From Utricularia gibba (taxonomy: Eukaryota; Plantae; Magnoliophyta), in contig NEEC01000030.1 of the NCBI GenBank assembly GCA_002189035.1, positions 310,001-374,000 of the forward strand: DNA of 64,000 nt. The letters run 5' to 3'. The notes below the pieces were generated by a model. The model had not been told where the DNA came from, searched no databases, and saw only the letters and a program-made list of their open reading frames with translations. The position numbers and the translations under genes are program-made. Below, piece after piece: positions 31 through 31,229 of this stretch (position 1 is its first letter; every line of letters starts with the position of its first letter).

Positions 31-1731
31 GTGGTCGAATTGAGTACAATGGATATTGAGTTTAAATCGATAACAACAATCAAGGCCCAACCTCTTGCCA
101 ATTTTGTGGTCGAAATGACAAGGCCTATAGACCGTTTTGAAGAAGCCAATGACCGATGGGCCATGCACGTTGATGGCTCGACGTACAACGGTGTTGGAGG
201 AGGAATAGACATCCGAACCCAAGATGGGGAACACATTTATATCACGGTGAAATTCTTATTCCCAGCCTCCAACAATGTGGCCGAGTATGAAGCTTTGATT
301 GAAGGAATGAAAATTGCCAAGGAACTAGGAGTGGCGGAGCTCGACGTCTACACTGATTCACGACTTGTGCAAGGACAGTTTTCAAGTGAATACGAAACCC
401 ATGACTCCCTCATGGCTCTGTGCCATATTCAGGTAAAAGAGCTGGCAAAAACCTTCAAGGAATTCACCCTGTCGCACGTGGCACGCGAGGAGAACGGATC
501 CGCAGATAGCCTCGCCCGATTTTCTGCAGGGTTTCATGAGCTGAGGGAGGGAAGTGTGATAATTCGGCTGCGGGATCAACCTTCAGTGACCTTGCGAGCC
601 GTGAATTGTATTACCCAGCAACCAGGAAATGATATCTCTCCACAACTGAGTCATCTCGATGATTGGACATCACCCTACGTCCAGTATCTACGAAATGGAG
701 AAACACCATCTGATAAATCAAAAGCTCGACAGTTAGAGATTAGAGCAAAGAGATATACACTGGTAGATGGAATTCTTTATCGCAGATCCTTAGATGGACC
801 CTTCTTGAGGTGTATCGGGGCAAAGCATTCTCAAGAACTTATAACCGATCTGCATGAAGAGGAATGTGGCAGCCACGTCGGCATACGATCCTTATGCAGG
901 AAAGCCTTGAGAACGGGTATTATTGGCCAACTATGGAGCGGGATATTACCGCCAATACCATGCGAGTACACCAAGAAAGCTGGTAAATAACCTGACCCCT
1001 CTTCCATTCTCATGCCCGTTCGATCGATGGGGAGTGGATATTATGGGGCCATTCCCCCAAACCTCGGGCCAAAGGAAATTTGTCATCGTGGGAGTCGAGT
1101 ATTTCTCCAAATGGGTGGAGGCTGAAGCCGTGGCAAAAATATCAGAGGAGACCGTTATTCGATATCTGTGGAGAAATATCTTCATCCGGTTCGGAATCCC
1201 TCAAGAACTAGTGATCAATAATGGAACCCAATTCGCTGGAGGAAGAATGGAGGCATTCCTGGATAAATATACGGTCAAGCACAACTTCACCTCGGTGTAT
1301 CACCCGCAGAGCAATGGTCTCACAGAGGTGACGAATCGAATGCTCAGGCTAGGAATGAAGACTAAGCTTGAAGATTTTGGAGGATCATGGGCAGATCGCT
1401 TGGATGAATTGCTGTGGTCATATCGCAGCACCCTCGGACCACCACAGAAGAATCCCCGTTCTTATTGGTTTACGGTTCAGAAGCCGTATGCCCTATTGAA
1501 CTAACCCTGAAAAGCTATCGGGTGGAACATTATAATGGAGAAGAAAATGCTGACCTGCGAAAACTGGAGTTGGAGCTGTTGGAAGAAAAACGGAAAAGTA
1601 TTTATAGCCGACTAGGGGCTCATCAGAGAAGAATGGAGAAGAGATATAACAAGTCGGTAGCCCCAAGGGAATTCTCTGATGGAGATTTGGTGCTTCGAAG
1701 CATTCAACCACAGAGACATGTTGGAAATTAG
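31..1731 (+). pseudogene. Tat pol C-terminus (aRNase H + integrase), frameshifted
   Basis: WAMHVDGS...NNVAEYEALIEG...YTDSRLV (RNase H); LHEEECGSH (integrase Zn finger); WGVDIMGPFP, YFSKWVEA, RFGIP, HPQSNGLTEVTNR (integrase core), spread over ORFs 31-990, 923-1504 and 1414-1731. Confidence 0.9.
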
Positions 1732-2674: not shown

Positions 2675-4765
2675 CTAAAGTGCTGGAGGAGATGAGGGGT
2701 TAATGGGAGGATTGGTAGAGGAACCGGTATGTCGCTCCATCCTGGCTCTCAACTTGGCGTCATTCTCTCTCCCTATCCTCGCCCGAATCAGTGCAATCAG
2801 CCGCTCCCGATCAACTTCGAACCCAAACTCCGGGGCCTGGAAAGTATCTACAATAACATCAAGCATGTTCTCATCCTTCGTCAAGGGGTTAATCCTATCG
2901 ATGCGCGGATCCATGATTGAAAGCCCGAATTCCCGGGTGAACTATCGTCTCTGACGATATAGAAGTAAGCAGATTAAGTCTCCTGCATAGATATCGGAGA
3001 GTTCGGCGAAACAGGCCGAGTTGACAAAGTCATATAGAAGACCCTGCCGAGATGCTTTTCGATCAAGTAATTCGGCCTCTAGTGCTGAAATGCGGCCCCT
3101 GGCATGCTCTAGTTCCGCTTCTCGAACAACTTTATCTAGGCGTTCTGAGCCACAACCTGGGCTTGAAGCCGAGAGACTGCCTCCGATTGAGAACCAATCT
3201 CTCTAACTATTCCCCACCCAAGTTAAAGCCTGAAAGAATATTCCAAGTCAAGGACCGACTACTTAGAATTTAGAAGAGGAAACGGGATACGTACCTGCCA
3301 GATCCCTTCAAGTACCGTCTCTGGCCGAACATCCGAGGTACTAGGCATAGCTCCATCCAGGATTCTCCTTAGTTCAGCTGGAACTAAAGGTAGAGGAAGC
3401 ACCGGGTTATCCCTTACTTCTACGAGGGCAGAATCCCTCTATATCTCGATTGGGGGAGCCGATATTGAAGCACCAGCCGAAAAGAATCTCGTATCAGGAA
3501 TGGGAGTATCACTGAGATCGGGTGATGGCGGAAGTTTCTCTTTCCCTTTCCCGGCTGAAGGACGGGGAGTCAACTCCCGGATCTCGGAGACTTCTACTAT
3601 TTGATCTTCCCCCGAGGAAGGATCGGCGGCGTCCAGCTGAGCTCCAATCGTATCAGCCTGAAAGAAAAACCGAAGAAAGGTTATAATCTGGAATTCGCGG
3701 TAACTGTTAAATAGGGGACAGACTGGAGCAGGGGAGGACTCCTCGAGTTCCTGCATCCTCTGCATCTCGGCAGAGAACCGCGCCATCACCGAATCTTCCA
3801 GGGAGCTTCTTCGAGCCATCTCTTCAGCTGAAAACGAAAATAGGAAAAGTGATAAGGCATAGTGCCGATTCTAAGACTCGGGAAAGCTGAACCCGACTAC
3901 CTCTTTGCCTCTTTGAGGGTTTGTGCGCAACTGCCTTAACCCTCTTCTTTTTCTTGGGGGCCCCGGTTTGAACAGGTGGGGGGATCGAGGGTGAAGCCGA
4001 AACAAGAGGGAAGGATGGAGAGGGGCTAAGAGGAAGGTTTCTCAAATCGGTGCCGTCGAAAGGAATGATATCGGGCCAATGGGGGTCTCGAGAACGACCG
4101 ATAATACCTGATCTTTTCAGCGACTCACCCGAGAACATCAAGGCACGAGACTCGTACCGAACTGAGCCTCGACTAAGCCTCTCGTAAAGGGCTTCACGAG
4201 AGTCGGAAGAAGACCGATGCGCACCAAAGATTTTGATCCTGAAAGGAGTTGGGGGATCAACTGGGAAATTCCACCGAAAACCCAAAGGGGGAGCTACCCA
4301 AACGAAAGAAGACCACCAATCATGGTGGGTATCGGGGGCTTTAACAACAAAGTTGGGGTTATCTTCAAATCGGCGGAATTGAAAATGAGATCGGCCATCC
4401 ATCGAGGACTTCGCTTTACGCACGGCAACCTTGAAGAGATGGAGGAAATCTACTAGAGTCATAACCGGATCCATACCGACCGAATAGAAGAGGAAGGTAG
4501 TGAAGCAGAATATGGAATTCGGGGCGAGGCAATAAAGCGGAATCGCAAAGGTATAGAGAAAGCGGACTATTAAAGGATGGAGTGGGTAGCGTAAACCACT
4601 CTCGAAATAGGCAAGCGGAACCGGAAGATTGAATGGAGGCAGGGGGTCCTCGCCTATCCCCCAACGAATTTCGGCATCCTGAGCAGGAGAAAGTTGATAC
4701 TCAGCAGGGATCGAGTACCAAATGTGAAGAGAGGGGATATTAAGTTCACTAGATCTCCTACCCAT
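2675..4765 (-). pseudogene. Antisense extra gene of the Tat element: Transposase_28 (PF04195)-like N-terminus plus coiled-coil-like C-terminus, predicted to be spliced
   Basis: YFESGLRYPLHPLIVRFL...LAPNSI...HHDWWSSFVWV. GT-AG intron 3900-3828 joins ORF 4765 in frame with ORF 3819; a second in-frame 66-nt GT-AG intron at 3723-3658; premature TAG at 3441-3439; AELEHARGRISALEAELLDR further on. Confidence 0.7.
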
Positions 4766-7053: not shown

Positions 7054-8963
7054 TTAGTGACTCTTCCTATTCGATTCTTGTTGACTGGAGCTTCTGGCAG
7101 CTCTCTTCATTTCAAGCAGGGCATCCTCGAAGCATCTGGCAAGAACTTTGGGATCCGGAATTATTTCCTTTGCAACGAGGATCTGCATTTCGGCAACTCC
7201 TGCGTAACTGATCATGTGCATCGTGATGGCCTGCACGATTATCTCAAAGTAAGAAGACAAACCGCGACGCCCGTCATGGGGGTGCCATGAGTGTGCACGC
7301 AGATATATACATATATACGGTCGCAAACTTACATGCGGGAGGCTGCTGGAAGTTACCCTGATGGAAGACATGGGGATGTTGGCCATCATGATCTTCTCCC
7401 TCGGCCCGACGATGTTCGACATTGTGAAACTGGTGTTGCAGATAACGCGGTAATTCAACAGCGCTGCTACCTACGGAAACAACCCAGTTTCTTGAATTTT
7501 GATGTGTTGTTGCAGATGAACAGGATGTCCATTGGGGTTGGGGTAATGAAAAAGCGAAGAAGACTAACTCTGGGTCCAAGAAGAGAAAGAATCAAGTCTC
7601 CAATATGGTAGCTGAATAAAGCTTCCAGTGAGAGCTTCTTATTATCCAACATGGATTTCGATCGCTTCAGAAACTGAATTGGATCGGAGTCACGCTTGTA
7701 GTAGTACACAGGCAAAAGCACGATGCCGAACATGTTCCCCCACCGCGTTCCGGAACCTGGAGCCATCAGCCTGGACAGATCCTAACCAGAAGGAAAAAAC
7801 AAAAACAGTTTTATAGTATTTACAAAAAAAATAAAGAAAAACGCATTTTAGTAACCTGCAATCCCGATTGCGGCCTCAAATTTACCATGGCGAGGCCCGT
7901 GACACGAAGCCCTTCCGTCAGCGCTGCATCGATTTATGCTAACATATAATTGCGAAGCTATATCCAAGGCATGAGTATCTTATTACAACAAGTTGGGAAG
8001 ATTTTCTTACCTTGCGGTGATGTGATGTCCAAGTACCTCGACAGCCCTGATGAGATGATCCCAAAGAGCACGTCGTTTATCGTCTGCCAATTTCACAAAA
8101 AACAACATACACGCTTTTATAGAGAACAAATTTTAGGTGTTTTCCTATTTTACTATTTTTGCGCTAACAGAATACGCATCTTGTCAGAACAAAATGAAAA
8201 TTGATCTCCTGAGGTTGTTATTTGAAAATGACGTTACCGCTTTCTCCAATGAGCCTTTGACGACTTTCATATCGTCCAGCCGGAAGCGCGCTGTCGCCAG
8301 CCGTCGGGGCCAGAGCTCCACCCCGGCGCCGCCGCGGATCGCCGTGTCTTTATCTCTCAACCACAATATCCGGGCCACAAACTCCAGGGCGTAGATGAGA
8401 GTAAACCACAGGACCATGGCCAATTTCAACGCACTCCACCGACGCGGCGGGCCAGAACCTGCACCGACCATACTTGGTGCTTGCGACGGATCATTGATTT
8501 TCCGGCAACAGGACATCATAAGTGACATCAGAGATATTCCATCGCCAAGCGCGTGGTGCACACGGAACACGATTGTTTTGTGCGCTAAAAGCAAGTGCAT
8601 CTCCCACAGAGGCTTATCGATTGGGAGCGGCGAAGAAACGGTTAAATCGGAGATGTAATCATTTACGGCGTCGCAATCGGAGACGCCTGAATCATCGGTT
8701 AGTCTCTCGAATCGGAGGATTAGGTGTTGATCTATGTCGATCTCTGTTTTTCGCCAGAATTCACGGCCGGCGGCATCTCTGACTAGGAGACTGCAGAATC
8801 TAGGGTGCTTCACCATGAGTGAGTTTCGGACCTCACTTTTAATTGTTTCGACGGCGTAGTGATGCTCTAATTCGACCGCGGTGTTGATGACCTGGTCCAT
8901 CTCTGTTCGCAAGAAGAGACGACCGGCCGGAGTCAACGGCTGGTCTGGCTCCGCCGTATTCAT
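7054..8963 (-). CDS. WSD1: Wax ester synthase/diacylglycerol O-acyltransferase (WSD1-like), 6 exons, 464 aa, apparently intact
   Basis: Exons 8963-8238, 8083-8011, 7923-7856, 7781-7569, 7470-7333, 7230-7054, all GT-AG with consistent phase. QPLTPAGRLF, catalytic HHALGDG, TINDVLFG, TSFTMSNIVGP, QILVAKEIIPDP. Symbol is family-level only. Confidence 0.93.
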
Positions 8964-9184
8964 CGCCGTTATTTACGTCAGCCGCCGAATAATCGTGTGG
9001 TCGGAGGAGGAGAATCGGCAGAAGGGGGCGGTTTCGATATCCCCTCACGCGTTTGACGTCTTCCGGGTTGATAGAAAGGGACAAATAACGTCTTCTATTT
9101 TTGTAATCAATTTTAGCGGCTCTTTGGTTAACAATTTCATCGGATACCAACAGGCATTGAGTGTGGACACCCAATGAGTAAATT

Positions 9185-12008
9185 GGCCGAATAGCACTCT
9201 GCAAAAAAAGTATTGGCTGAATAGCACACGTCTGAAAAATGTTTGCAAAAATAGCATTTTTATGATTTTTTTAATTAATTTTATTCAGTATACTTTATTT
9301 TAAAACAAAAAAAAATACAAATGTATATTATATTTTTATATTTTTTTAAAACAAACATTTATAAATAAAATTCAATGCATTATATTTTAATTTTTTATAT
9401 AAAAAATATATGTGATACTCATTAAAATCATATATATTAATTATTTATACTAATATATGAATAACTATGAATAGAGAATCTTTTAAATTAAATCCTTCAT
9501 TGAATGCTATAAGAAATAAATAATATAAGACATCCAAAAAAATAGAGATAGTAATATTTCATTTAATTTTGATTTTTAAGAAACTAAAATTATAATTTAT
9601 TGATATGCAAAAACTAATACTATGGAACTTTTATCATGTGTTACATTATTGAAGGATATGACTAAAAGTCAAACAAATATTACTTTGTATCAAATTAGTG
9701 TTGCTTTTAAATAATTCATCCAACTTTAAATCAAATTATTTTTGCTTTAATCAATTCATGCTTTATGTCAAATCATTGTTCCTCTAATCAATGCTAATTT
9801 GGCCATACTCGTTGATCTAAGTCTATAAAATGGTGCACATTCTGCTCATTTTCTATCACAAGCCATCTTGAGTCATAAGTCAAAATAGTGGTTTTCTATT
9901 TTCATCAATGGTCATCCTCCCGGTTACTCCTCCTTAAGTCTATAAGGAATGTAACCAACCTTGGTATTGAAGGCGTGTGCCCCTCTTCACCTTCTACGAG
10001 ATAGATCACAAGTTTGTTGATCTACAATCCCATCCGTTGAAGAGACCCAATCTGACTTTCTATGTCAGCCACTGCCATTTGTCTCAATTAGCATCAACCC
10101 TCTCTCTAGAATTTGGCTTTTGCACCTCTATAATCCTACCCTAAATATTCTCTTTTATTATCTTGAATTTTACATCTTTTTAGGGGTTCTAATGTCTGAA
10201 ACTCTTATAAATGTGCGAGTTTTCTATGGTGTTAATATCTCAAATGATATATATGGGCATATGGTGTATTCTATTCCTCCAATAGCATCTCTTCGTTTGA
10301 AAAGAAATATTTCTTATGAATCATTTATTCGTCGGATTTATGCGATTCTAGATGTTGAATCCACGCAGTACTCCCTTGCATGCTTTTTATAGTTCTTTGA
10401 AGGTGAATTAAGCACTGTCAATTGCCTTCATATTACAGATGTCGGCACACTACGGTATTTGTTTCAGCCAAATCACACAGGCTCAGGAGTAGACATATTT
10501 GTTGAAACTGAAGCTATCATTACACAACATCAAGCATCATCTTCAAGAAACATAGGTATGTTCTTTATATATATATTTATATATTTAATCATAAATAATT
10601 ATTTGATTTTTGTGCATACTTAAGACGTAGGCTGCCAACTCAACTTGAACCACTCTACGGAACCTCATCCAAGTCAGCAACATGAAAGGCCACGTGGTTA
10701 GTCTCTTCATGCATTTTGTAGTTTCTAGAGAATTCATTTAACATATTTATTTTCCTTATTTACTTTATAAGTATTAAATTTTCATAGAATTTGTAGTTTA
10801 GAATACTTTATAATTTTTTATATTTACAGAATATTGACTTCTCATTTTTCATTTTATCTCCATTTTTTAATATTGAAATTTTATTAAATATTTATTATTA
10901 AAGCTTTTTAAATTTTATATCACATTTTTTTGATAACCAAGTTTTAATTTTTCATTAGATTATTTGTTTTTTCCTGATAACTCATATCCACAAAATATTG
11001 GATGGAACCAAGAGGATTTTGAGCATGTTGAACGACGTGACAATCTTCTAGTTACAGATGAAAATGAATATCATGGAGTTAGTATCCATGATCAAAATCC
11101 AGACCCTGCAATTCTGCAAGATGATATCCCTTTTACAGATTCTGAGAGCGAGATTGTTCCAGACACTCTTTGGAGTGAGGATGATGATTTGCAAATGGTT
11201 GAATCTGATAGTGAGCCCAACAATGAATCTCTTCCTATTGGGCGCAACCCGCCAATGTGGCAAGATTCAGCTGATCTCTCGGAAATTGATTCATCTTATA
11301 ATGCCACCACAATGCTTCTTGCTCCCGGATTTACCTTTGATAGCAAGGATGAGTTGAAAGATGCAGTCACAAAGTATTCTATTTTTGTGGTGAGAAGAGA
11401 GTTTCATGTGTCTAGAAGCAGTAATTCAATCTATCATCTCATTTGCCGTCAAAATCATGAAAAAAAGTCCAGATGTTCATGGCACTTGAATGCGCGCTTC
11501 CAAAATAGGACAAAATTATGGAAGATTACAGATTTCCAAGAACCTCACACATGTGATGTTCGGAGTTCCTTGGCAAAGGAACATGTAAATCTGCGAAAGG
11601 ACTTCCTTGCTCGAGAAATAATTGACTTGATCAAAGACCGACCAAGAATCAAGGCTTCCACAATTCAGGGAGAAGTTTTAAAACAATTTAAATTCAAAAT
11701 CTCTTATTGGAAGGCTTGGTCCATCTTGATACAAGGTTATGAGCTTGTGTACGGCACTTGGCAGGATTCTACAAGAGAATTACCAAAGTATTTGCAAGAA
11801 GTAGAGAGGCAAAATCCTGGATCTGTGGTAATTTGGAAAAATGCCAGTGATAATAGGGGAGGGCCAGTTCTACACTATGTTTTCTGGGCATTTGCGCCAT
11901 GTATTGCTGCATACAAACATTGTCGTCCAGTCATACAAGTAGATGAGATGCATTTATATGGCCAATACAAATACAAACTACTAATTGTCGTTGCCATGGA
12001 TGCTGGTG
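9185..12008 (+). mobile_element. Mutator-like (MuDR) element, 3'-truncated
   Basis: TIR-like start ggccgaatagcactctgcaaaa...aaaatagcatttt followed by a MuDR transposase; no right TIR found. Confidence 0.7.
10192..12008 (+). pseudogene. MuDR/MULE transposase, premature stop and truncated at the start of the DDE domain
   Basis: GFTFDSKDELKDAV...CSWHLNA...WKI...HTC (MuDR domain), ISYWKAW, FWAFAPCI...CRPVIQVDEMHLYGQYKYKLLIVVAMDA; stop at 10390-10392. Confidence 0.88.
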
Positions 12009-12056
12009 GACCAACTCGGCCGACACGCAATCAATGTGCACGCCTTGGGCCGAGTT

Positions 12057-12210
12057 GGTCAAATAGCATTCTGCCGAAAAAGTATTTGCTGAATAGCACA
12101 CATCTGAAATATATTTGTAAAATAGCACTTTCATGAATTTCTTGATTAATTTTATTCATTACTTATATAAATATATATTACTCTATTTTAAAACAAAAAA
12201 TACAAATGCG
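12057..12210 (+). repeat. Second copy of the MULE TIR-like sequence, same orientation as 9185
   Basis: ggtcaaatagcattctgccgaaaaagtatttgctgaatagcacacatctgaaa...ttttaaaacaaaaaatacaaatg aligns with ~9185-9325. Confidence 0.75.
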
Positions 12211-16985: not shown

Positions 16986-17002
16986 TATGCTTCAATCCCT
17001 CC

Positions 17003-17247
17003 AGGCACTGCAAATATACCATCGCGGTGCTTGACATTAGAAGGCTTCAATGTCCTCCAGGCACCGCAAACATGACATCAAGAGGCTTCAATGTCCTCCC
17101 GATACCAAAAACATGCCAATGTGGTGTTTGAACATTAGAAGGCTTCAATGTCTTTTAGGCACCACATGCAGGTCATTGTAGTGCGTGGACATCAAAAGGC
17201 TTCTATGTTTTTGGTTCAAGCACCGCAAATTTATTGTTGCGATGCCT
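17003..17247. repeat. Degenerate tandem array (~56 bp period) of a 30-bp dyad alternating with a second palindrome
   Basis: Units start at 17003, 17059 (internally deleted), 17100, 17157 and 17218; e.g. aggcactgca-aatataccat-cgcggtgctt; spacer gacattagaaggcttcaatgtc. Confidence 0.8.
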
Positions 17248-17355
17248 AAACCAGGCAATCTATCTCAATGATCTCCATGCATTATAAATGTAAAGAGGCA
17301 GAATTGCATTACGAATGTGCTACAAAACGAAATCAATGTTTCAATGAAAAATGCA

Positions 17356-19145
17356 TTACAAGTTTGGAAATTTAGAAATAAGTTGCGGATGGTGTCCCTT
17401 CTCTCAAAAAATGCTATGCTTCATTCACGAAAGTTGGCATATTGGAGGCCACTACTAGTCCCTCCAAGAAGTTTCATATCTCACCTCCTTTTGCCAAGGC
17501 AATATCCTCAATATTTTTATGGGTGTATGGCATAAGAAAGATGGCATTATCATGCTGTGGAACATCCAAAGTTACAACTGGTAAGTATGCTGACACAAGA
17601 GTGTAACATATAATATTCAGAGAATTACCATCAGTAACTCGATTCCTAATACACTTGAATGGTGAGTCATCAATAAGTAGTGTATGGTTACTATGATACT
17701 TTCCTTGGAATCCTGCATCTGGATGTCATCAGTGCTCCAACTCTTTTAGCATCACATTCTTTGCATGATTGTTATGAACATCTACATCTATTTCGCTGTT
17801 TTTTGAGGCATCCCATATAAAAGCCAATCTGTTGGCCTCCATAAAGCCAAAGACCCACTTCACTATCCCATCAAGTTGTGCCCTATAAGAGAGTTTCAAC
17901 ATAAGTCACATGTATCAAACAATGAAATATGCAATAAAGTTTATGATGTCAATATTATGCGCCCCGTGATGACCATATCCCCACGTCAAGGTGCTCCATA
18001 CACCATTCAATAAACTATCGGGCATGAGGTTGTAAGAAAACTATAAAAAAAAAAACACAAAGCATTGCATCAGAGCCGTATAATGTATAAACACTGAACA
18101 TATTATCTTCACCTTACCATATCTACCATAGATGACTATGCATAAACACTGAACAGTCTTTGAGATCGACCTCAAAACACAATATCAGCCAACACACCAT
18201 TTACATCTAATACAATCAATTTCCTAGGAGCTTCCACAGCAACGGGTTAGGGGCCACCATAGATCCATCAACTCTCATACCACTCCAATTTTTCACAAAG
18301 TGATATGTTTTCTTCTAGTAGATGACTAACATCTATCTACTAAATCTCTTGATGGACTCGAGTATTGTTACTGGACTCTTCTACAACATCATCATCAATT
18401 TCCTCAACGTGTGCTTGTAGGCATTTACGAGACACCCTAGTTTGACCACATCAAAAGCAACAAGTCCCTATGAAATTGACATATGGTGGCAATATATCAT
18501 TCAAAAATAAACTCTTGTAACCGAAAATATCAAGGAGCGCATCTACTCCTTCACGGGGTATCCTCTCAAACCCTGCGCTAATTTTTAAGTGAGTCAAATA
18601 AATTTTGGATGAGTGTTTTACTTGTGATACAGAAAAAATACCATACCCTTTACCTTTCCGACAGTAGATGAAGACTCAAGTTGTGTGGGAAAATCTAGTT
18701 CTTTCGAAGGGGACACTCACACGAAACTAGTCCACCAATTATTATACCCACTATGCACGTCTTCTACCAATGTTATACTTGGCTTTCCTTTCAATGAGAA
18801 GTGGTTGGTTCTCCAATTTTTCTTACATTTGCTAACTGCAAAAAAAACTAGAAGAGCAAGTACAAGGCGTTCTTTGGCACACACGCTCATGAATGATAAA
18901 ACATATGTGACCAGACAACAAGTTAAATGAGAAAACGGAACTTCTAGGCAATTCACTAATTCAACTAAAAATAGCTCCATGGGCAATCTCAGTCCATGTT
19001 GAAAGTGTTTCGTACTAACCGCAAAACCCAACGGTCCAACCCGCAATGGAAGGTCACCATCATTGGTCTCCTCATCCTCCTTGTCCTATAGGAAGAAGCT
19101 GTCGGGTATTATGACCCACAGCCTCAACTTGTCTGATGTGCGCAT
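17356..19145 (-). pseudogene. TRP28-like + FCP1/NIF-like HAD phosphatase fusion gene, copy A
   Basis: MRTSDKL...FQHGLRLP...HFSLKGKP...WWTSFV; GVDALLDIF; LEWYES*W; RKLIVLDVNGVLADI; FIEWCMEHLDVGIWSSRG; VMLKEL; HTLLIDDSPFKCIRN; PQHDNAIF; multiple stops; colinear with copy B. Confidence 0.75.
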
Positions 19146-19489
19146 CGTCTCGAGTGTGTGTAGTGCTACTTCAAAATTTAAAAAACCACCTAACAAACCT
19201 TTTCTCCAGCTCCTTGCCAACTTGCGCCTTCAACCTTTCTTGGTATGCGTCACAATTCAAGGCAATTATCATAATGATTTACACTCTGTGAAAACGCGTT
19301 TGTAGTGTGTCGAGCGGCGAGTTGTAGTGTGTGTTACCATGGGTGAAAAGTGTGTGTTTTAATTGGGGTGGTGAGGGTTTCAATGAATATATATAATATT
19401 ATTAAATTTTATAAAAAAAAACGGCCGTTCATGCTAACTCTACAATGCTAGCAAGGTCATTGCAAATGCAGATCACTAATGCACAGAGA

Positions 19490-22085
19490 CAAGATACTTG
19501 GTATTGCATAATTTGTAAGAAGGCAGGACACATGGCTAAGAATTGTTTCACCATAAAAGAGCCACCGCCTTGATGGAGGAAAAAATATAGTAAAACCAAC
19601 AATTCTTACCAGCGGTCCCCAAGGCAACATAACCATCAATAATAATATACATATGCTCAGCCCCCACAAGCTTGGGGTACTCTATTCACTCTACCTAGAT
19701 AGTTGGGAACTTATGAGTCATATAAACCTATGGCTTATTGCATGGAGACTTCCATGGATGAATCGTCTCATTTGATTTCCCATGATCATAACCCCACGTA
19801 CTTTGACTATGTGCAGCTCATTCAACGGTAACTTGGCAAGCTCTTGAGTGGGAGTACTCACACACCAGCACCTACCACAGGCAACATATAGTAAATATGA
19901 CTGAGTTGGAGTTCACAGGTACATATTTTGACTCATGCATGGAAAATGACATTTCCACGAATTGTACGTGTAATACTTGGGAGTGGATATTGGATTTTGG
20001 TGCCACAACACACATTGGATACTCGAGTGCCTTTTTTGGCTCTCTACACCTTGCTGTCAACATCCAAGTTCGATTGCCAAATGGACACTCTGTGCCGGTG
20101 AACTACTTTGGTGATATATTCCTCACCGATAGAATTCGATTATTACACACTCTTTGTGCCATAGTTCAAGTTTAACCTTATATCAGTGAAGTGGTTGATC
20201 GATGATGCAGGTATATTGGTTACTTTCTTCAGCCAATATTGTACTTTGAAAGACCGGATTACAAATAAAGTTCTTGCTGTTGGGAGACTCAAGAATGGCC
20301 TATACATTCTGTATAAACGCTCATTCATGTCAGCCCTACTTGACAGTTTTTCTGCATTGCATGGGACAAAGGAGGTAAAGAGTGCTCTCACAAATGTCTT
20401 GCTACCAAAGCTATGCTTCTATGCTGCTAGTTTACAGCCTAATGATGAAAGTCTTTTATGACACTACCATCTTGGCCATGTGTCTGACTCTAAGTCCATG
20501 CATTTGCCCTTTGCTTGTGGATTGAATGGCACTCCCTGTGATGTTTGTTAGTTTGCTAAGTTTCACAATCATTCGTTTTCTTTAAATGCATCCAGAGCAC
20601 CTCATGTCCTCTATCTCATACATTGCGACCTATGGGGACCTTCTAAGTACTTTCTCACGATTGTAGACGATCATACTCGGGTCACTTGGACCTTCTTGGT
20701 CAAGAAGAAGAGCATGGTCAAGGACTAATAGCTGCATTCCTCAGCTATGGGGAAAATCACTATGAGCATACTACCAAGCATATATAGTCTGATCAGGGGG
20801 GGGGGGGGGGGCGAAGGAGTTTTTGAATTCCATGTTTCTGACAGCCCACATGTGCAAGGGCATTCATCATCAGTTTTCGTGCACCCGAAAACCCTAGAAA
20901 AATGTGCGGGTAGAATGGAAGCACAAACACCTGTTAGAAGTGACCTGCATGCTGATGTTCGAAGCCGGCTTACCCAAGGAATTCTAGTGCGAGGCTATCC
21001 TTACTGCAACGTATATCATCAACTGCCTGCCCTCCTTTGTGCTGGAATGGAAAACACCTTTTGAAATTTTGATAAACAAGCCTCCTAACTTTGATCATCT
21101 ACACGTATTTGGCTATCTTGCGTATGCTGGTAATACAAACGAGGACAAGTTGGTGCCTAAAGCATGGAAATATATTTTCCTTGAGCCTCAGGATATGGTC
21201 TCTCGAGATCTAGCCTCATACATTCCTGGGCATAATTTGCCTCAGGCCGATTCTGATCTATCTCCCCACAACAACTCCATGGGCAGTGCTAGGTCTGATA
21301 ATTCAGAGGGTCCTATAGCCCCTGTTTGTAATGAAGACCCTGTGCAGCACAATGTTCCGGACACTAATAATCATATGTTGAGGCACAGTGCTTGCCTATG
21401 TTCCTCACTAATCTATTTACACGACTATTCCACATACCAGATTGATGCTTCGGAGTCTAATGAGCCTTGCTTACTCACAAAGCCCAGGCATTATAAGAAG
21501 GCATCTCAGCATCGTTCTTAGCATGATGCTATGCAGTAGGAGCTGTGTGCTCTCGAGTAGAATCATGCATTGAAATCAAATGCTTGCGATTGTTTGCCTT
21601 TACCCCAAATCAAATGCAGCATCGTTCTTAGCTGGGACATAGTGCCTTTACCCCTCAACAAGCTTGCGATTGTTTGCAAGTGGATCTATAAAATCAAATG
21701 CTTGAAAAATGGACAAATTTTCAGATACAAAGCTCGCCTGGTGGCTAAGGGTTACACACAGGTTGAGGGCATTGACTTTCATGATGTTTTTCTCTTGTTG
21801 CAAAGGCAACCACCATCCGCATCCTCATGGCTCTTGCAGTGCTACATCGGTGGCATCTCCATCAGGTAGATGTCAATAACACCTTTCTCCATGGGTACTT
21901 GGATGAAGAGACCTACATGAACCCCATGAAGGCCTCTCGTGTTGGGTTGGGAACATTTGCTTACTAAGAAAATCCTTATACAGTTTGAAGCAAGCCTCTC
22001 ATCAGTGGAATCTTTGAGATAACAAAGTCCTTCATGGGACAACGAGTCTTGCACCTTTTGATGCATTCCATTTCGTTTTTCATCA
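19490..22085 (+). mobile_element. Ty1/copia internal remnant (gag Zn knuckle, protease, integrase, partial RT)
   Basis: CIICKKAGHMAKNC, WILDFGATTH, GRLKNGLYIL, IHCDLWGP, YFLTIVDDHTRVTW, CKWIYKIK...YKARLVAKGYTQVEGIDF. Confidence 0.85.
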
Positions 22086-22610
22086 ACTGTTGTGTTTTAG
22101 AGTCGAGCATGTGCGTGTGAGTGCTTGCACCTAAGGATTTGTGGTAAAGCCTTACTTGCACAAGTCTTGCACGTGTGACTGTCTTATTATGTTGTTTAGT
22201 ATTTAATTTGAGGTTCGATTCTCTTTTTTCGCAACGTTTTCTTAACTAACGTGCTCTCTAGTACCGCATAACCTTAAAGCCCTCATTTTTCAGGTGGGTT
22301 TAGCCCTCTAAACCCTTAGGTAAAAAGTGTTGTATGTGTTTTTTGTGGTGGTTTAGTAAAACCCAAGGGTTTGTATTGTCCCGAAATAAGCTTGTAGCTG
22401 ATGGTTTCACACAAATACAACTTTTTCGATAATACCCTTCTACTCCATAAGCAAATCCACAACAGTAAATCTGTGTATTTTTTCATCCTCTTCAACACAA
22501 ATCTGTTGGGTTTTTGGAGGTACATGGTGAGTGAGTTCGAATTTTGATATTTCGATGAAAACCCATACTTCAATTTAAGCCAAGAGTTCTTATTTTTTTT
22601 TTTTTCGCAT

Positions 22611-23973
22611 ATGATGGAGTCGGGTGATTTTTTTTTTTTTTTTGAAAATCACAATAGGTTGTGTGTTGCTTATTCAGGCTATTGCAATGCTTTCAAAGAA
22701 GATTATTTTGGCTGCCCTTGTTGCGGCGCATTGCGTTGGTCAACACCTATGCGTTATGCGAATTATGATTGTTATAATGTTGCATTTCTTTTGTACACCC
22801 ACCGATAGGAGAATTCGGTTCTCATAACGAGAAAAGATACCGTGACAAATAGAGTATTTGTCTGCCTTGATATCTTATTCAAGGAGTGCTTGTCTTGAAA
22901 ACTTACGCTTAAGTGCAAATGTCTTCAACAAGTTATGCTATGTTCTTCGAAGTAATGATAGACTAACCACTTCAAGGTATGTTGATGTTCCAGAGCAGGT
23001 TGCATTGTTTTTGGGTATTTTAGGTCATCATAGGAAAACAAGGCAATAAAAATTCGAATTCATGCGAAGTAGCTGGATAGTGTCCAAATATTTCAATGTG
23101 GTATTGTCGGCGATGCTGTCATTGCATCAAAATTTACTTAAGACACCTGTGTCAATTGATGTTTCTGATCCTAATTCTAGCTTCAGATTTTTTGAGGTAT
23201 GCAAGCAGATTTTTCATTGTAGTTCTGTATTCTGCATGCTGTAACTCTCTTGTCTATTTTTTAGAATTGCTTGGGTGCATTGGATGGCTCATATTTCTAG
23301 GTGAAAGTCAAGAATTAGGATAAACCAAAGTGGAGGAATCGTAAAGGAATCGTGTCCACTAATTTGCTAGGAGTGTGTGATGATAAGCTCATGTTCATCT
23401 ATTTGTTGTCCGGGTGGGAGGGATTCGCTGGTGATAGCAGGGTGCTACGAGATGTAGTTTGTTGACAAAGAGCATTCACTATACACAATGGTAAGTGCTT
23501 ACAATGTGTAGAAGTCCATAGTTATGAGTGACTTTCATGCATTCCATTTTTTTGTAGGGCATTATTACTTTTGTGATAATGGCTACACAAACGTAGCGGG
23601 ATTTCTAGCACCCTACAGGGGTGTTCGGTACCATCTGAAAGAGTGGGGTGCTGGGTCCAATGCTCCACAGAATGCGAAGGAATATTTCAACATGCGCATG
23701 CTTCTGCGAGGAATGTTATTGAGAGGGCATGGCGTTTAATGAAAATGAGGTGGGATATTTTACGAAGTTATAGTTTTTATTCGATGAGAAATGCCAACTG
23801 ATCCATGGGAAGAAGTCATTCCGGAAGAGTACCACAATCCGGATTCACAGGACTACGAAGATGATGAACATATTTCCTCCATAGGAAACTTAGAGGAGTG
23901 GACACAGTGGCAGGATTCAATGGCTGAGAGAATGTTTGCGCAATGGAGAGAGACCACACGAAGAAGGGTATAA
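22611..23973 (+). pseudogene. PIF/Harbinger transposase (DDE_Tnp_4-type), with stops and introns
   Basis: CLENLRLS...EQVALFLGILGH; NCLGALDGS; WRNRKG..STNLLGVCD; LLSGWEGFAGDSRVL; HYYFCDNGY...FLAPYRGVRYHLKEW; start coordinate approximate. Confidence 0.88.
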
Positions 23974-24121
23974 AGTGTACTAATAAACACTGATGTTTTA
24001 TTGGTTTGGCTTAAAGACATTTCATTTCATTTTCCAATAGTTGATAAGCATTGCCCTGTGTTGTATTCATATTGTGCAAACACATGAGTTATGCTAGACT
24101 ATTGTCACAACAATGTGATAC

Positions 24122-24436
24122 ATTCATTGGAAACTGGAATTTGCAGTGCTTGGAAAGATAGGATAACTTGAAGGATGCTTTAGGTTTACACACACCGTTC
24201 ACTCATATGTATAGGTGCAACTATTGCATGCTCTACACTATCTCCATGTACATTGGAAGAATTGTGTTCCAGGCACTGCAAATTCCTGCTCTCGGTGTCT
24301 GGATGAAATGCATTCCTAACACCACAAAAACGCCCCTCTCAGTGTCTAGGAGACATGCCTTCCACGCACTATAGAATGCCGCTCTCACCATCTGGAAGAC
24401 ACGTTTTAGGCACTGCAACCTTTGTTCGTGGTGCCT
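24122..24436. repeat. Dyad array 2 (~46 bp period)
   Basis: Units at 24271, ~24317, ~24364 and 24408, plus a half site at 24141-24151; aggcactgca-aattcctgct-ctcggtgtct. Confidence 0.7.
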
Positions 24437-25048
24437 GGAGCAATCATGGGCCGGAATGAATATTAGGCCTCGCTTATCTGGGCCTCATAAGAAACCCTCC
24501 GGCCTAGTCGTCACTTCCCTTCACCACGCACCTAATCGCTGCTCACTGCAGACCAGGGCACACTGTCCTCACCTCAGCCACATGGTCCCTCCACCATTTG
24601 CTTCCCTCAAGAAATGCTTACTTCCAAGAAACTCCAAGTTCGGTTCGCAATTCCAAAGACGTACAATCTATGGGACAAGGCAAGTGATGACACGATTGAC
24701 GGTGAGGTTTTGTCTAGGGTTGGAGTGATCGGATTTTCGGTGTCCACCGAACACTTTCGGTGTGGACTTCGCTTGCCACCACCACCATTCATATGCGAGT
24801 TGCTAGCATGTTTGGAGGTCCCATTGTCCCACCTGACACCCTGCTCAATCGCTCATGTGTTGGCCTTTTTGAGTGTGTGCATGGAAGAACAAATTACTCT
24901 GGCCCTACCAGTTTTTTTTTGCAGTGAGTGTGTGTATTCGAAACTGGAAAACTAATCATTTCTCACTGAAGGGTAAGCCAGGTATTGCACTTGTGAATTC
25001 TATTCGGAGTGGACATGATGCATGGTGGACAAGCTATATTTGGGTGTG

Positions 25049-26331
25049 TGACGAACGTTTAGAATGAGGTTGCTAAATGTTGCGGTCTAGCACATTCAAT
25101 GCATCAAAAGAAATTTATAAACCTAGCTATTCTACTACAAAACAAGGGTCGAATCCACAGGGATTAATGTAGTGTGGCAAGCAAGGGTTGAATCCACAGG
25201 GATTAATGTAGTGTGGCAAGCAAGGGTTGAATCCACAGGGAATGTTTGCAATTTCCTGAAGTTTATCACATTTACTGAAAACAGAGGGGTTTCCTAGGGT
25301 TTAGTTCTAACACGGATAAGACCTAAAATAACAGTGACTGAAAGAAACGAGTTGCAGGGATGAAGAGACACTTAAATTAACACGAATGCATAGGAAACAT
25401 AAAATAAAAATGATTTTACTGGGTTTTACACCAGGGTCTAGCTCTTGTGTCACTCAAGAGAGCCCATAGGCTTAAGTCTAGCTTTGGAACGCTTAAAAAC
25501 AAGGCAAGGGTTTGTAGACACAGAGTATGGGTTCGTAGGACCAGTCAATAGCATATTAAGCTTAAAAGAAAACGTGAAAAGCTTAAACAGAAACATGTTT
25601 ATAAGCTAAAGCAAGGTTACAAAGAGTTTCCCGTTCATAGCAAGGTACCGAAATGCAGCATAAAGCATAAAAACCAAGACAGTAGCAGTAGCAAGTTCAC
25701 GCAGAAATAGAAGTGCAGAAAATGGAAAATAAGGCGTCTAGTGGTTGCTCTCGGTCGAAGATCTGCTGAAAATCAAGTTTCTGGGCAGAATGACGGTGTA
25801 GAAGTGTAGATCTGGAGGTCGCCGAAGATGTTTTCCAGAGAAATGAAGTTCTCCTCACTCCTGCTCCTACTGTTCGCTGTCTGTGCACTCTACGTACACA
25901 GTATGCTCTCCCTTCTCTCTCCCTTCCTTTTTCCTTTTGCCACTAAAAAGCAAGGGTAGCTTTGTCTTTTCCCTAGGCTTCTAGAAGGGAGATCTCTGCT
26001 CCAAATCTTATCTTCTCAGAAGAGCGGCTACTTTCAGCGGAAAGTGACTTTTGCACAGCTTTTCTGTTCTATTTGACTTGTCAACACGGAAAGTGCGCAG
26101 TTACAGTACTAGCTCTTACCCTGGTAAGACTTAAAACACAGACTAGACGAAATATTACAGTTTTCGGTTCAATTGTTTCCAATTGAGCCTGTTTTCACAA
26201 TAAACATATTTCAATAGTCTAAATACGCAAAAGAAGACATTTTAGCACACTAAACAACATTTAACCCTACAAAACACACTTAAAAACATATATAAAAACA
26301 CAATAAAAACACAATAAAAACGGTGTTTTCA
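25049..26331 (-). mobile_element. Athila-type solo LTR (1283 bp)
   Basis: TG...CA ends, TSD gtgtg/ttgtg (4 of 5 match), gtcgaatccacaggga motif; removing it restores the host reading frame. Confidence 0.8.
25143..25241. repeat. 39-bp tandem repeat, ~2.5 copies, inside the solo LTR
   Basis: caagggt(c/t)gaatccacagggattaatgtagtgtggcaag at 25143, 25182 and 25221. Confidence 0.95.
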
Positions 26332-28444
26332 TTGTGTTTGCTGGAAGACCTACGAATTCCAACTACTCTCGGCTCCTTCAAGACAATCGGAAAGGTAAAG
26401 TGTAATGTGTGATGTAGTATGGTTGCATGGCTAGTGTACTATGATTTATGTTATTCAATTATTCATGTTGTAGGATTTGATAGACTATCGAAGCAGGGGT
26501 GGATGCATTGTTGACTATGTTCGATGAAAAGAGTGAGGCGTTGAGTGACATACTACCCCCTGTGGTGGACGCTGCCAGTACTCGCCACTTCTGGTGTGGT
26601 CACGGCAGAGTGATACGCGAGTGCCCAAAGCCTGACGACATGATCATTGAGGAAGAGATGTCACTAGCATTTGCATCTTATTGACAGCGGAATGTAGGGA
26701 GCAATGTGGAGGATACATTGGCCCCAGCTACGTTCAAGGCTAGATTGGTATGAAAGTAGGTGGGCATACACTGGACCCAGTTCATCGCAAGCAACAAGTG
26801 CGCAAGCTCCTTGTGTTGGATGTCAACGGAGTGCTAGCGACATTGTCTTCAAAGCCAAGTACTAAAGGTTGCATCGGAAACTAGACGCTGTGATATATGA
26901 GCGAAATAGTAAGACACCTTAACATTGTCTCATGGTTGTGTCATGTTCAACTGATCCATTAGTTTTTCTCGCTTTGGCAGTCTTCCTCAGGCCCTTTGCT
27001 CACGAGTTCATTGAATGGTGTCTTGGAAACTTTGATGTCGACATATGGTCTTCAAGGGGCACGTAAGTCCCACTCCACAAAATCTGCAGTGCATGCGCTG
27101 CTATCTAATACTCTAACATCTCTCTAGGTTCTATAGTGCACAACTACATGAGATCATCAAGTGGGTGTTTAAGCCAGATGCAGACACCTCACTAGCTTTC
27201 ATATGAGATGCATCAAAGACCACCTAAACGCATGTACGTGTGCATGATAATAGGTCAAAAGATGCTATGTTGAAGGAGTTGTCATGGATTTGAGGGGAAG
27301 ATGAAGGCTTCTTGGGTCGGTATGATGCAACCAACACCTTACTTATTGACTCCGTTCAAGTCCATCAGAAACCCAGTTAAGTCAATCTGCAATCATATGG
27401 TCTGGTACGCATGTTTCTTGCTGACACTTAGGCCATGGTCTTATTGTGCCACAGCATGACAACGCTGTCTTCCCGACGCCATACCAGTACACGGATGTAA
27501 GAGATGCTGCGTTAGCTGAGTGTGGAGAAATACGCATATTCCTTCAAGGTCTACTAGAAGCAAATGATGTACCAAGTTTCGTGAAGCATGCACGAATTGG
27601 ACAGCCTCCATTGGATGCTAATCACCCCTATGGGATTATTACAAAGTACTTGCTTGAACATTCATAGCATGTAACAATGGTTTGAATTTCGGAACATTAT
27701 TATGTGACTCAGTCTATTTTAATCATGGATTTTTCAATATACACTTGATAAATTAAAATAAGTAAATATATGTTCTCAAATATTCTTATATGCATATTTA
27801 TTTTAAATAATACCTTGATTTAATATCTTATATTTCTTAGACTACTTTGTTTACTACAATGCCAAAAGAATCCGTTTTAATAATTGGATTCAAAACATCT
27901 TTTATTTATTACACGTTTTATTGATCATGTATAATATTTATTAGTTTTTAGAAGTATAATCTTTTTACTTATTTTCTTTATGAATTTTAAATATTGACTC
28001 TACGAAACAAATTTAAACATGTGGTAACATTCAAAATAAATGAGAACTAAAACAATCTTGAATCGAAAATTCCATGTAAAATATTACATGTTTTTATAAA
28101 TAAGAAATTTATCAAAAACTTGATGCAAGTTAATGAATTTTTCTTATTGAAAATTCTACATATCCGGATTGTATGTGAACACGTAGTCATCATATATTCA
28201 ATTGTCAGGAAACAAACTAATGGAAATTTAAATATTTACACTCTTACACAAATTCTTGAAAGTCTTATTGAATAAAATTGTGTCTATTTAATTTCCATAA
28301 AATACACATAGGATGTGATCAATCAAACTTGTTGTTATTCGATATGTATGTGCATTGGACATATTTTAATTTATGATAGTTGTTGTAATTAAAATAGATT
28401 ATTATAGAGATATAGTGAATTTACATATCATAATATATGCACAC

Positions 28445-28795
28445 AGGCACTCAGTTGGGGCATCGATGCTAGGTACTGCAAGCGCATATTTGCAGTGCCT
28501 AGAAAGATAGGATGCATGCATCCGAAGGACAATCCAGTGTAGTCAATACTTCAAATCGCATGTGGGAGGTCATGCTGGGTGCCACACACAGCAAGACTCA
28601 GTTGGCGCATCGATGCTAGGCATCGCAAGTGCATATTTACGGTGCTTGGAAAGATAGGATGCATGCCTCCGAAGGGCAATCCAGTGCAGTCAATACTTCA
28701 AACCTAACAGTGGGAGCTCGGGCTGAGTGCCACACACATACACTCAGTTGGCGCATCGATACTAGGCACCGCATGTGCATATTTGTTGCATCAGC
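28445..28795. repeat. Dyad array 3: 146-147 bp tandem repeat, ~2.3 copies
   Basis: ctcagttgg(g/c)gcatcgat at 28450, 28597 and 28743; dyads at 28471, 28618 and 28764. Confidence 0.9.
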
Positions 28796-29398
28796 CTGCA
28801 TCAGCCACAGAGTACTCAGCCTGCTTTGTTGCATCAGTAGCATCAGGGACACATTCTGCAAATTCTCCAGTGGCTCTATCTTTACCAAAGATGATGCACC
28901 AATCTGGATAGTAAGGCTAGCGCTTAAACCGCAACAAGTTTTACACATTCTCATTGTGCTGCACATGTAATCCATAAGTGTACATTAATAATCTCATAGG
29001 AACGACCTACTACATATACATTAGAACAACAATACCTGTTTGAACTCCACCCACAAATCCTCACTAGCATCTACCATGTTTGTTGAGTTATCATAGCCGG
29101 TACATGACTTGTTGAGAAAGTCAGATAGGGTATTGTAATCTTTTTTCCAGTTATGAATCTTTGATTGCATATGGGGAGTGCCTCTGATATCTGACCCAGG
29201 ACACAATTTGAGGAACGCTTCCTCTAGTACTTGAAAGTAATTACCTTTGAATCCATTCTTTGCTTTCCACCCACCTTGAATGATATCCTTTAGAGCGTGG
29301 ATCAGAAAGTGCTCTTCATCAGGTTTCCACTGTCTTTTGGTCTTAATGTTGTCACCACTTCTTCCTCATTTTGTTGTAGGGACGTTTGCTCCAACCAT
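28795..29398 (-). pseudogene. PIF/Harbinger ORF1 (Myb/SANT-like DNA-binding protein), 3'-truncated
   Basis: KRQWKPDEEHFLIHAL...GWKAKNGFKGNYF...HMQSKIHNWKKDY...GYDNSTNMVDASEDLW, intron, then WCIIFGKDRATGEFAE. Confidence 0.85.
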
Positions 29399-31229
29399 GC
29401 CTGCAACCAATATGTAAGTGCACAACCAATGACAAAACCACGATGCACAGGTAGCTGAATATGGCACAGGAAGTATAACAACATTATATGGGTTTCAAGG
29501 GCACCATTCACATCCATATTACTCAAAAAACATCACACACTAACACCCAGTCACTCAATCTATGTGGTTAAGGTCATTCAAGGGGAAAATGAAATAAACA
29601 CCTCAAATTTGAGAAAAAAATACCTGGTGCATCACCCAATACCCAATTTTTCGGTAGATCAAACTTGCTCCCGGAGTTACATGAGCCGAAAATCCATGAT
29701 ATTACATCGCAGATCGATGGTTTCGAATTCCCCAATCTGTGAATCTCACATTTCTATATGTGGGTTTAAAACAGGATAATAAGATATTATATTATGCATA
29801 AAGGGTATATTAGAGAATTCCTTTATTCTAGTATTGAGAACCTATACATAAATCCTTCTAAAAAACATACAAAATTGATAATCCCATATAATTGAACCCT
29901 ATCTACCAAATACATAATTCATTCTAAACCATTATTTATGGGATACAAAAAACTAAAATAATCTAACAAACATGGCTGAAGGAGTTTGAAAGAATCAAAG
30001 TTTGGCCTTAAGCACCTAAGAAGAAGGGCTCAATTGAACATCATTATGTCTAATCTATTTACGAGATGTGAGGTATAGGGGTTAGATTTGGGTGCGGAGA
30101 AAATATGGGTTATCACAATAGGTGACAAAGCTCTGGTGGGATGGTTGATTCTATAATCATACTAAACGATGGACGGTGCTATAATGGTTACAAAGTAGTA
30201 CTATTTTAGAATAACACCCCAAAAGCATGCGCAACCAGGTCAGTTTTCATGGTTTGCACACACACACAAGAATGAGTTTTAGACAAGGTGGATGCTAGAT
30301 CCAAAGCCATTTTTCTATATAGTTTTAAAACCAATCTTTCACTTTATTTTTTCTTTTTTGAGTCATTGTTTTGAAAAGAAAATTCCAATAACAATTTCCT
30401 GTGGATACGATCTTTATTTATTAATTCGAGGGTCTTTGTACACTTGATAAATTAACACCAAGTTTTTGGTGTTGTTGCTCAGGAATTATATTCCTTCGAA
30501 ATCTCTTTTCTGATTTTTTTTTCTTTTTATTTGATATTTTTCTGTTATTTTCAAGAACTTCATACTTAGCGCACAAGGAGTTGCTTTTGACTAGTGTTGC
30601 ATGCGCAAGCATAGGGATTCAACTGAGATGTACTCATTGTACCTGGAAATTGACAGGACTTGTCAGAGAATTTGGTTGGAAAATCATTGAGTGCAAGCGC
30701 AATGAAGGGAAAACATGTTTCGGAGGCATTCTAGACATGAGGAGGACTTTCTATAACATTTGAACTAGATAGCGAATGGGAACAGATGCCAAGACATCAG
30801 CCAAACAGGGCAACTAGATCAACCTTGCTGATAAATCAAAGGGGAACAGGTATAGACAGATCTTCTGCTCATCCTGATCGTGCAGGTTCATATCAAAGGC
30901 CTAGTGACGGATTTGATCAAGGGCATGCACGAGAACAAATAGCTACAAGGTTGGGATCAAATCAAGGGGTGGAACTTCTCTGAGAAGGACCCACTAGTTC
31001 ATTATTAGACTCGGAACGAACCAACAAGGCACTGGAACATGATCTAGGAATGCACAAGCACATAGGAGTTAATGAAGGCCATTTTCAATCAGTGCTTACG
31101 CAAGAATGGCAAGAGAACAGAGCTTTTGTACCTCATCAATGAGGGCATCATAGAGTGAAACCGATGCAATAATTGAAATACTCATCATGAGGAGAGATAT
31201 GAATTAATAGAGGATTTTGAAGAGGAAAC

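Follow-up and report, generated by a model that had tools for sequence, protein, structure and literature searches.

Two degenerate copies of a chimeric gene lie in a 64,000-nucleotide stretch of the Utricularia gibba genome (assembly GCA_002189035.1, contig NEEC01000030.1, positions 310,001 to 374,000 of the forward strand), which we refer to as the window and in whose own numbering all positions are given. The gene joins an N-terminal PF04195 domain (Transposase_28, or TRP28), a domain normally encoded by retrotransposons, to a C-terminal region that likely represents a NIF/FCP1-like module of the HAD family. Both copies are pseudogenes, and this locus holds two fossils of a gene family. In our judgement the two, inactive now and separated long ago, probably go back to a single chimeric gene of five exons that was carried as cargo by a PIF/Harbinger transposon family in a Lamiales genome.

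Two Colinear Copies of One Gene

The two copies were delimited by tblastx colinearity and by listings of open reading frames (ORFs) and reading frames:

17356..19145, minus strand: copy A of the chimeric gene, a pseudogene
24614..27667, plus strand: copy B of the chimeric gene, a pseudogene

When the two stretches were compared with each other by tblastx, nine same-sense colinear blocks emerged with a combined E value of 2.6e-86, in agreement with an initial annotation of this DNA that had described two colinear copies interrupted by stops and frameshifts; the interruptions, too, were found in both. Amino-acid identity between A and B is about 56% over 386 aligned codons, whereas nucleotide similarity is confined to a few patches of 66-77%, and conservation is thus clearest at the protein level, as had been claimed. 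Tblastn searches of the whole window with pieces of the gene recovered copies A and B only, besides a distant PF04195 ORF at 3824-4765. Common to both copies are, in the N-terminal part and the linker, the motifs MRTSDKL/MLTSKKL, GLRLP, HFSLKGKP, WWTS, GVDALL, ILPP and LEWYES*W/LDWYESRW, followed by K-L-[IL]-V-L-D-V-N-G-V-L-A, FIEWC...DV.IWSSRG, KWVF, MLKEL, TLLID(D) and PQHDNA.F. The ORF and frame listings contain all motifs that had been quoted initially, and the positions given for the D-V-N-G codons, 18196-18207 on the minus strand in copy A and 26819-26830 on the plus strand in copy B, are exact.

Exon–Intron Structure and Decay

The gene comprises five exons, separated by GT..AG introns of 65-134 nt that occupy matching positions in A and B. 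These matching positions indicate a five-exon gene in which both domains belong to one transcription unit in either copy, and the shared layout bears out the earlier view that the two domains are parts of a single gene. Its parts are distributed as follows:

18720..19145, minus strand: copy A PF04195 (Transposase_28) module, from MRTSDKL to WWTSFV (Pfam match below cut-off; BLASTP)
~18175..18567, minus strand: copy A exon 2, in one frame, with the linker (GVDALL, ILPP, C-x2-C-x8-C, LEWYES) and HAD motif I
17417..18041, minus strand: copy A exons 3-5, with motif II (FIEWC..DVGIWSS), MLKEL, motif IV and the C-terminal PQHDNAIF (frame listing, tblastx)
17654-17683, minus strand: copy A motif IV, TLLIDDSPFK (frame listing)
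24614..25064, plus strand: copy B PF04195 module (Pfam, Atlas)
25065..26340, no strand assigned: extra sequence of ~1.27 kb within copy B exon 1, absent from copy A, whose frame is continuous
26401..26473, plus strand: copy B intron 1, GT..AG, at the same position as the copy A intron at ~18568-18650
26801..27667, plus strand: copy B putative NIF/FCP1-like HAD module, four exons (Pfam NIF, PDB and Atlas matches on the motif II exon)
26819-26830, plus strand: copy B motif I
26980-27063, plus strand: copy B motif II
27132-27350, plus strand: copy B motifs III/IV
27440-27667, plus strand: copy B C-terminal exon

In copy A, the frame at 19229-18621 contains the N-terminal module with the first part of the linker and is broken only by two stops; no frameshift occurs in exons 1 and 2, the second of which runs in a single frame from G-V-D-A-L-L through L-E-W-Y-E-S to K-L-I-V-L-D-V-N-G-V-L-A. 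About ten in-frame stops are spread over this copy (for example at 19086-19088, 18717-19, 18451-53, 18268-70, 18015-17, 17726-31 and 17474-76), and several of them face tryptophan or arginine in copy B, with TGG changed to TAG or TGA in the first case and with a TGA in A opposite an AGG or CGC of B in the second. Copy B has frameshifts near 24930, 26490 and 26745-26800, stops in exon 4 (27204-06, 27225-27 and 27291-93) and a motif IV broken by a 5-nt deletion near 27345-27352. Its extra ~1.27 kb is probably a later insertion into exon 1, and contains a 39-bp tandem repeat at 25143-25241 (2.5 copies, 98% matches).

Within the linker, both copies preserve a [CH]-x2-C-x8-C stretch, reading C-F-*-C-G-Q-T-R-V-S-R-K-C in A (18421-18470, minus strand) and H-F-W-C-G-H-G-R-V-I-R-E-C in B (26575-26624, plus strand). 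It looks like a degenerate gag-type zinc knuckle; a Pfam search of this stretch gave no match.

The N-Terminal Module Is a PF04195 Domain

Copy B matches Pfam PF04195 with 36.7 bits (E 4.9e-9), above the gathering cut-off of 26.2 bits, and copy A matches it with 17.4-17.8 bits (E 0.004-0.005), below that cut-off; over the module the two copies are 52-55% identical. In the Atlas, 70 of the 100 clusters nearest to the copy B piece are PF04195 (score 0.96). A BLASTP alignment of 120 aa (E 2e-7) between copy A and the ORF of Retand type at 3824-4765 continues to WWTSFV/WWSSFV, beyond the 69-residue Pfam core. The identification of this domain in the initial annotation is upheld by all three comparisons, and the N-terminal module can be assigned firmly, by its sequence matches, as a complete PF04195 domain encoded by exon 1.

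TRP28 is known as the product of an antisense ORF of Retand/Tat Ty3-gypsy retrotransposons (PMC11963269; PMC6317226). Over its first ~190 aa the chimera corresponds to this domain, together with the I-P-x-x-Y and W-W-x-x-F regions on its flanks, but the domain forms here the first exon of an intron-bearing gene, is joined to a HAD module and stands in a DNA-transposon setting. None of 63 surveyed Retand clusters carries a phosphatase domain (PMC11963269). The placement of the Retand ORF, antisense between pol and the 3' long terminal repeat (LTR), has no counterpart at either copy, as neither pol nor LTR was found around A or B. Elsewhere in the same window, a gypsy RNase H-integrase region (31-1504, plus strand) is followed by an intact, antisense PF04195 ORF of 313 aa (3824-4765, minus strand). 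This is how the two are usually placed in Retand elements, and the pair illustrates what sort of sequence the first exon of the chimera probably came from.

The AlphaFold model of the copy A module has a moderately confident core at residues 30-105, in which three helices are followed by a beta-hairpin at a predicted local distance difference test (pLDDT) score of 70-80, and is mediocre overall (pLDDT 61). Good structural matches to the model were confined to two Arabidopsis proteins, ASY2 and At3g60930, in their PF04195-like regions (template modelling score 0.58). Very weak PDB matches, with E above 1, are enriched in winged-helix proteins (ORC2, Cdc6, MarR, IscR and Fur), and the predicted core may thus bear a weak resemblance to a winged helix. 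These matches are compatible with the DNA binding that has been predicted for TRP28 of Retand (PMC11963269).

The C-Terminal Half Resembles NIF/FCP1 Phosphatases

The C-terminal half was searched as separate pieces between stops and frameshifts, never joined across stops. Among them, the motif II exon of copy B (26932-27066) matched Pfam NIF (PF03031) with 16.3 bits (E 0.008), a score for a piece only and below the cut-off of 21.8 bits. The only PDB match of this exon was UBLCP1, a phosphatase of the FCP/SCP family, again on motif II, and 66 of its 100 nearest named clusters in the Atlas are NIF (score 0.88, 180 shared features), with other HAD families next. By inspection, both copies show the canonical order and spacing of the HAD motifs I, II and IV and of the C-terminal block N-A-x-F...D-V; judged in the same way against the features of the family, the D-V-x-I-W-S-S of motif II is present in both copies and the L-L-I-D-D-S-P-F-K of motif IV is intact in A. 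Motifs I, II and IV and the C-terminal helix block are thus laid out as in the FCP1, SCP, CPL, UBLCP1 and Tim50 proteins of PF03031, among which UBLCP1 is the best solved relative.

What sets the chimera apart from this family is motif I. In both copies it reads L-D-V-N-G-V, which keeps the first aspartate and has asparagine for the second, and so departs from the D-x-D-x-[TV] signature. The second aspartate of HAD motif I is the general acid/base, and the fold can be used as a non-catalytic binding module, as in Tim50. Since a DxN motif lacks the usual general acid/base residue, the module may bind its substrate rather than turn it over.

Could the likeness consist of chance motif matches, in a PF04195 protein with an unknown C-terminal extension? 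The single exon with a profile match falls short of the Pfam cut-off, seven other pieces of the NIF part gave no profile match and either nothing or chance-level matches in the PDB, the last exon fell among unrelated bacterial clusters at low recognition in the Atlas, and motif I lacks its second aspartate, all of which would fit such a protein. Against it stand the agreement of Pfam, PDB and Atlas on the motif II exon, where it is other HAD families that come next, and the canonical arrangement of the motifs and the C-terminal block in A as well as in B. We consider chance resemblance very unlikely and hold, with moderate confidence, that the C-terminal half is likely a NIF/FCP1-like HAD module with a DxN motif I, as had been proposed initially from the motifs.

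Selection Preceded the Death of Both Copies

Identity between A and B at codon positions 1/2/3 is 62/75/41% over the aligned codons, with dN (nonsynonymous divergence) at 0.37 and dS (synonymous divergence) saturated. The same ranking is seen in each part of the gene (59/75/35 in the PF04195 module, 64/74/40 in the linker and 65/75/46 in the NIF module; p 6e-11 to 7e-5). A neutral simulation set to the observed overall identity and filtered by tblastx in an identical way gave a flat 62/63/60%, so that the codon-position pattern is not an artefact of the selection made by the method. The four introns of A and B are no more alike than shuffled sequence. That the pattern recurs in all three parts while the introns are saturated implies that the fusion is older than the split between A and B and evolved as one protein. 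Read from these substitutions, purifying selection acted on the three parts jointly for as long as it took silent sites to become saturated, and only afterwards did each copy lose its activity. The notion of an old, selected gene, put forward in the initial annotation, is therefore strengthened; a dN/dS near 1 would have spoken for neutrality, and between A and B a dN of 0.37 stands beside a saturated dS, in a pattern unlike the simulated one.

Plant DNA transposons commonly capture gene fragments (PMC13317346), and one may consider the two copies as a functionless transduplicate, in which pieces of a Retand ORF and of a host NIF gene were picked up by a DNA transposon in a capture of the Pack type and never made a working protein. 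That neither an intact copy nor a full-length homologue was found, and no transcript either, the stretch being absent from all RNA runs listed, would agree with this origin. A never-functional capture, however, would give a flat codon-position identity, as the simulation did, whereas position 3 is here near saturation while position 2 stays at 75% in all three gene parts, and the exons have kept their amino-acid identity and matching splice sites although the introns are saturated. Such an origin thus appears highly improbable to us, and we regard the chimera as a gene that was under selection before its copies died.

A PIF/Harbinger Transposon as the Probable Carrier of Copy B

Two genes lie on either side of copy B:

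22846..23970, plus strand: degenerate PIF/Harbinger transposase (DDE_Tnp_4 pieces with E 0.003 and 2.4e-5, colinear in the profile; a stop and frameshifts)
28800..29365, minus strand: Myb/SANT gene of the Harbinger ORF1 type (Myb_DNA-bind_3, 44.5 bits, E 3.1e-11, cut-off 23.6)

Copy B is situated 640 bp downstream of the transposase and 1.1 kb upstream of the convergent Myb_DNA-bind_3 gene. A DDE transposase and a Myb/SANT ORF1 are the canonical genes of PIF/Harbinger elements (PMC4482050; PMC2836001). Because both of them flank copy B, its carrier is, on the evidence of these neighbours, a PIF/Harbinger DNA transposon and not a Tat/Retand element; the link to Tat-type elements that had been drawn initially is not borne out for the carrier. 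The element differs from canonical ones in having a third gene of ~3 kb between the two usual genes, and a survey of 380 PHIS families records PIF/Harbinger elements with a transposase and a Myb/SANT ORF only (PMC4482050). The three-gene span amounts to at least ~6.5 kb, compared with an average of 4.1 kb for autonomous PIF/Harbinger elements (PMC4482050; PMC2836001).

A search for terminal inverted repeats and target-site duplications around B, which is a decayed copy, found no inverted 14-nt pair (allowing up to 2 mismatches and demanding a matching 3-bp flank) between 21900-22900 and 29350-31200; membership of the three genes in one mobile unit therefore rests on gene order. Harbinger genes were also looked for beside copy A and were not found there, and this copy is a solitary remnant. 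A Copia fragment, from 19445 to ~22000, separates copy A from the element of copy B.

Both copies are flanked by arrays of a short dyad:

16995..17250, no strand assigned: array of ~30-bp dyads, AGGCACTGCAA-N7-9-TTGCAGTGCCT, 3' of copy A
24113..24440, no strand assigned: the same dyads, 5' of copy B
28438..28790, no strand assigned: the same dyads, 3' of copy B, in three 147-bp units

The dyad gave 9 matches, against 2.1 expected. Some dyads fold as DNA hairpins, with z-scores of -2 to -3.6, and a search of Rfam with 16-31 kb of the window gave no match. The dyads have stayed recognisable while the neutral sites of A and B are saturated, which suggests that they are functional cis-elements of the family; they may also be candidate binding sites for proteins of the element.

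Distribution of the Gene

An exhaustive phmmer search of 1.84 billion representative proteins with the 113-aa N-terminal piece of copy B returned five weak matches, the best of them 37% identical. NIF is absent from all five, which are simple PF04195 proteins or fragments; a full-length protein with both domains was not found in the protein searches. Nothing was returned when the N-terminal piece, or an alignment of the last exons of A and B, was used in word-indexed protein searches, within a length window that leaves out full-length proteins. The two nearest matches come from contigs of only 0.9-1.0 kb and are without context. One of these contigs, of doubtful relevance, is the Logan contig L001 (SRR2033663, 909 bp, 20% G+C), in which a 70-aa ORF is 37% identical to residues 1-67 of copy B and begins at the same start methionine.

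The window is plant DNA: a leucine-rich repeat (LRR) receptor kinase gene in it, at 42398-44380 (minus strand), is 65-67% identical to its best matches, which come from Paulownia, Sesamum, Rehmannia and other Lamiales. With many annotated Lamiales proteomes in the collections, the lack of any close relative of the chimera argues against a conserved host gene. It argues for a gene that is lineage-restricted, transposon-borne and masked by annotation pipelines.

The opposite view would be that the copies belong to a host gene family, consisting of a domesticated PF04195 domain and a NIF phosphatase, of which two pseudogenised paralogues remain in a transposon-rich region, the Harbinger neighbours of copy B being coincidental. 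The solitary position of copy A and the terminal repeats missing around B would be expected from such a family, and a strong signature of purifying selection together with a conserved exon–intron structure is typical of host genes; fusions of the plant mobile domain (PMD) with PP7, such as MAIL3, are host genes as well. Even so, the best relative reaches only 37% identity over the PF04195 part in spite of the many Lamiales proteomes searched, both copies are dead, and conserved dyad arrays flank A and B as cis-elements of a transposon would. We give a host gene family little credence for these reasons, and favour the view that the chimera was cargo of a PIF/Harbinger family.

Literature searches for Transposase_28/PF04195 combined with phosphatase, for Harbinger combined with NIF/HAD and for Harbinger with an additional ORF retrieved no description of such an architecture or cargo, consistent with the earlier statement that no description of the fusion was known.

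Discussion

Our analyses of the two copies revealed a gene with a PF04195 domain in its first exon, a C-terminal half that is likely related to NIF/FCP1 phosphatases, a history of purifying selection and, in the case of copy B, a position between the two canonical genes of a PIF/Harbinger transposon. A number of results weigh against the interpretation of this gene as transposon cargo with a phosphatase-like module: the motif II exon scores below the Pfam cut-off and the other pieces of the C-terminal half match nothing; the PF04195 module was modelled with mediocre quality and its winged-helix matches are very weak; no protein with both domains was retrieved and no intact copy was seen; the termini of the element were not found, which leaves gene order as the link between copy B and its neighbours; and copy A has no Harbinger genes beside it.

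On the basis of the domain content, we propose the following model for what the chimeric protein may once have done. The protein would have served the transposon, with its PF04195 module tethering it to DNA, perhaps at the dyads that flank the gene. Substrate, or just binding partner, of the NIF-like module would be a phosphoprotein, which might be the tail of RNA polymerase II or a chromatin factor. Under this hypothesis, the transposon would have been served by a protein tethered to DNA, possibly at the dyads, and working there either as a NIF-type phosphatase or as a phospho-binding factor. A more far-reaching version holds that a Harbinger family built a new protein from a retrotransposon TRP28 and a host HAD resembling the phosphatases of the polymerase carboxy-terminal domain, that this protein was long selected, and that it acted as the family's own effector of chromatin or transcription, tethered to the dyads. 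We offer this version as speculation and think it unlikely.

What would be the relevance of such a protein? The closest analogy lies in MAIL3 and in the MAIN/MAIL1-PP7L system of Arabidopsis (PMC7156037), in which a transposon-derived domain, there the PMD of Ogre/Tat type, has a phosphatase-like partner, either fused to it in cis or associated with it in trans. MAIN/MAIL1-PP7L acts on transposon silencing and gene expression, and PP7L is thought to be catalytically atypical (PMC7156037). The likeness to MAIL3 had been stated accurately in the initial annotation (PMC7156037) and is an analogy only, since the folds are unrelated on both sides, the PMD as against PF04195 and a PPP metallophosphatase as against a HAD module. 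In addition, MAIL3 is a selected host gene, whereas the chimera is taken to be transposon cargo and both of its copies are dead.

If the more far-reaching version is correct, the chimera would be a transposon-encoded counterpart of the PMD-PP7L module of the host and would give a first functional clue to TRP28, which is widespread and uncharacterised. PIF/Harbinger elements are the textbook two-gene transposons, and the TRP28 of Retand is without known function. A third gene in which TRP28 is fused to a phosphatase-like module, and which selection preserved long enough for silent sites to become saturated, would be evidence for the exchange of domains between classes of transposon and for the ability of a DNA transposon to keep an accessory protein; the fusion would also provide TRP28 with a testable, phospho-dependent partner. 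The parallel to the independent associations of PMD with PP7 in host genes hints at a recurrent solution in which a transposon domain is combined with a phosphatase. The value of the finding lies in the gene family and not in this locus with its two fossils.

Other Features of the Window

The remainder of the window holds further transposons and host genes. A Copia element at 46399-51364 (minus strand) is bounded by LTRs of 283 bp with 94% identity to each other (46399-46681 and 51082-51364) and has long ORFs for gag, integrase and reverse transcriptase. Host genes encode the LRR receptor kinase, which is At2g16250-like and spans 41265-44380 in all (minus strand), and a WS/DGAT acyltransferase (7054-9204, minus strand). 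A 390-aa ORF at 10964-12136 (plus strand) resembles Mutator-like elements by eye and is without a Pfam match, and an Athila ORF1 lies at 63265-63867 (minus strand).

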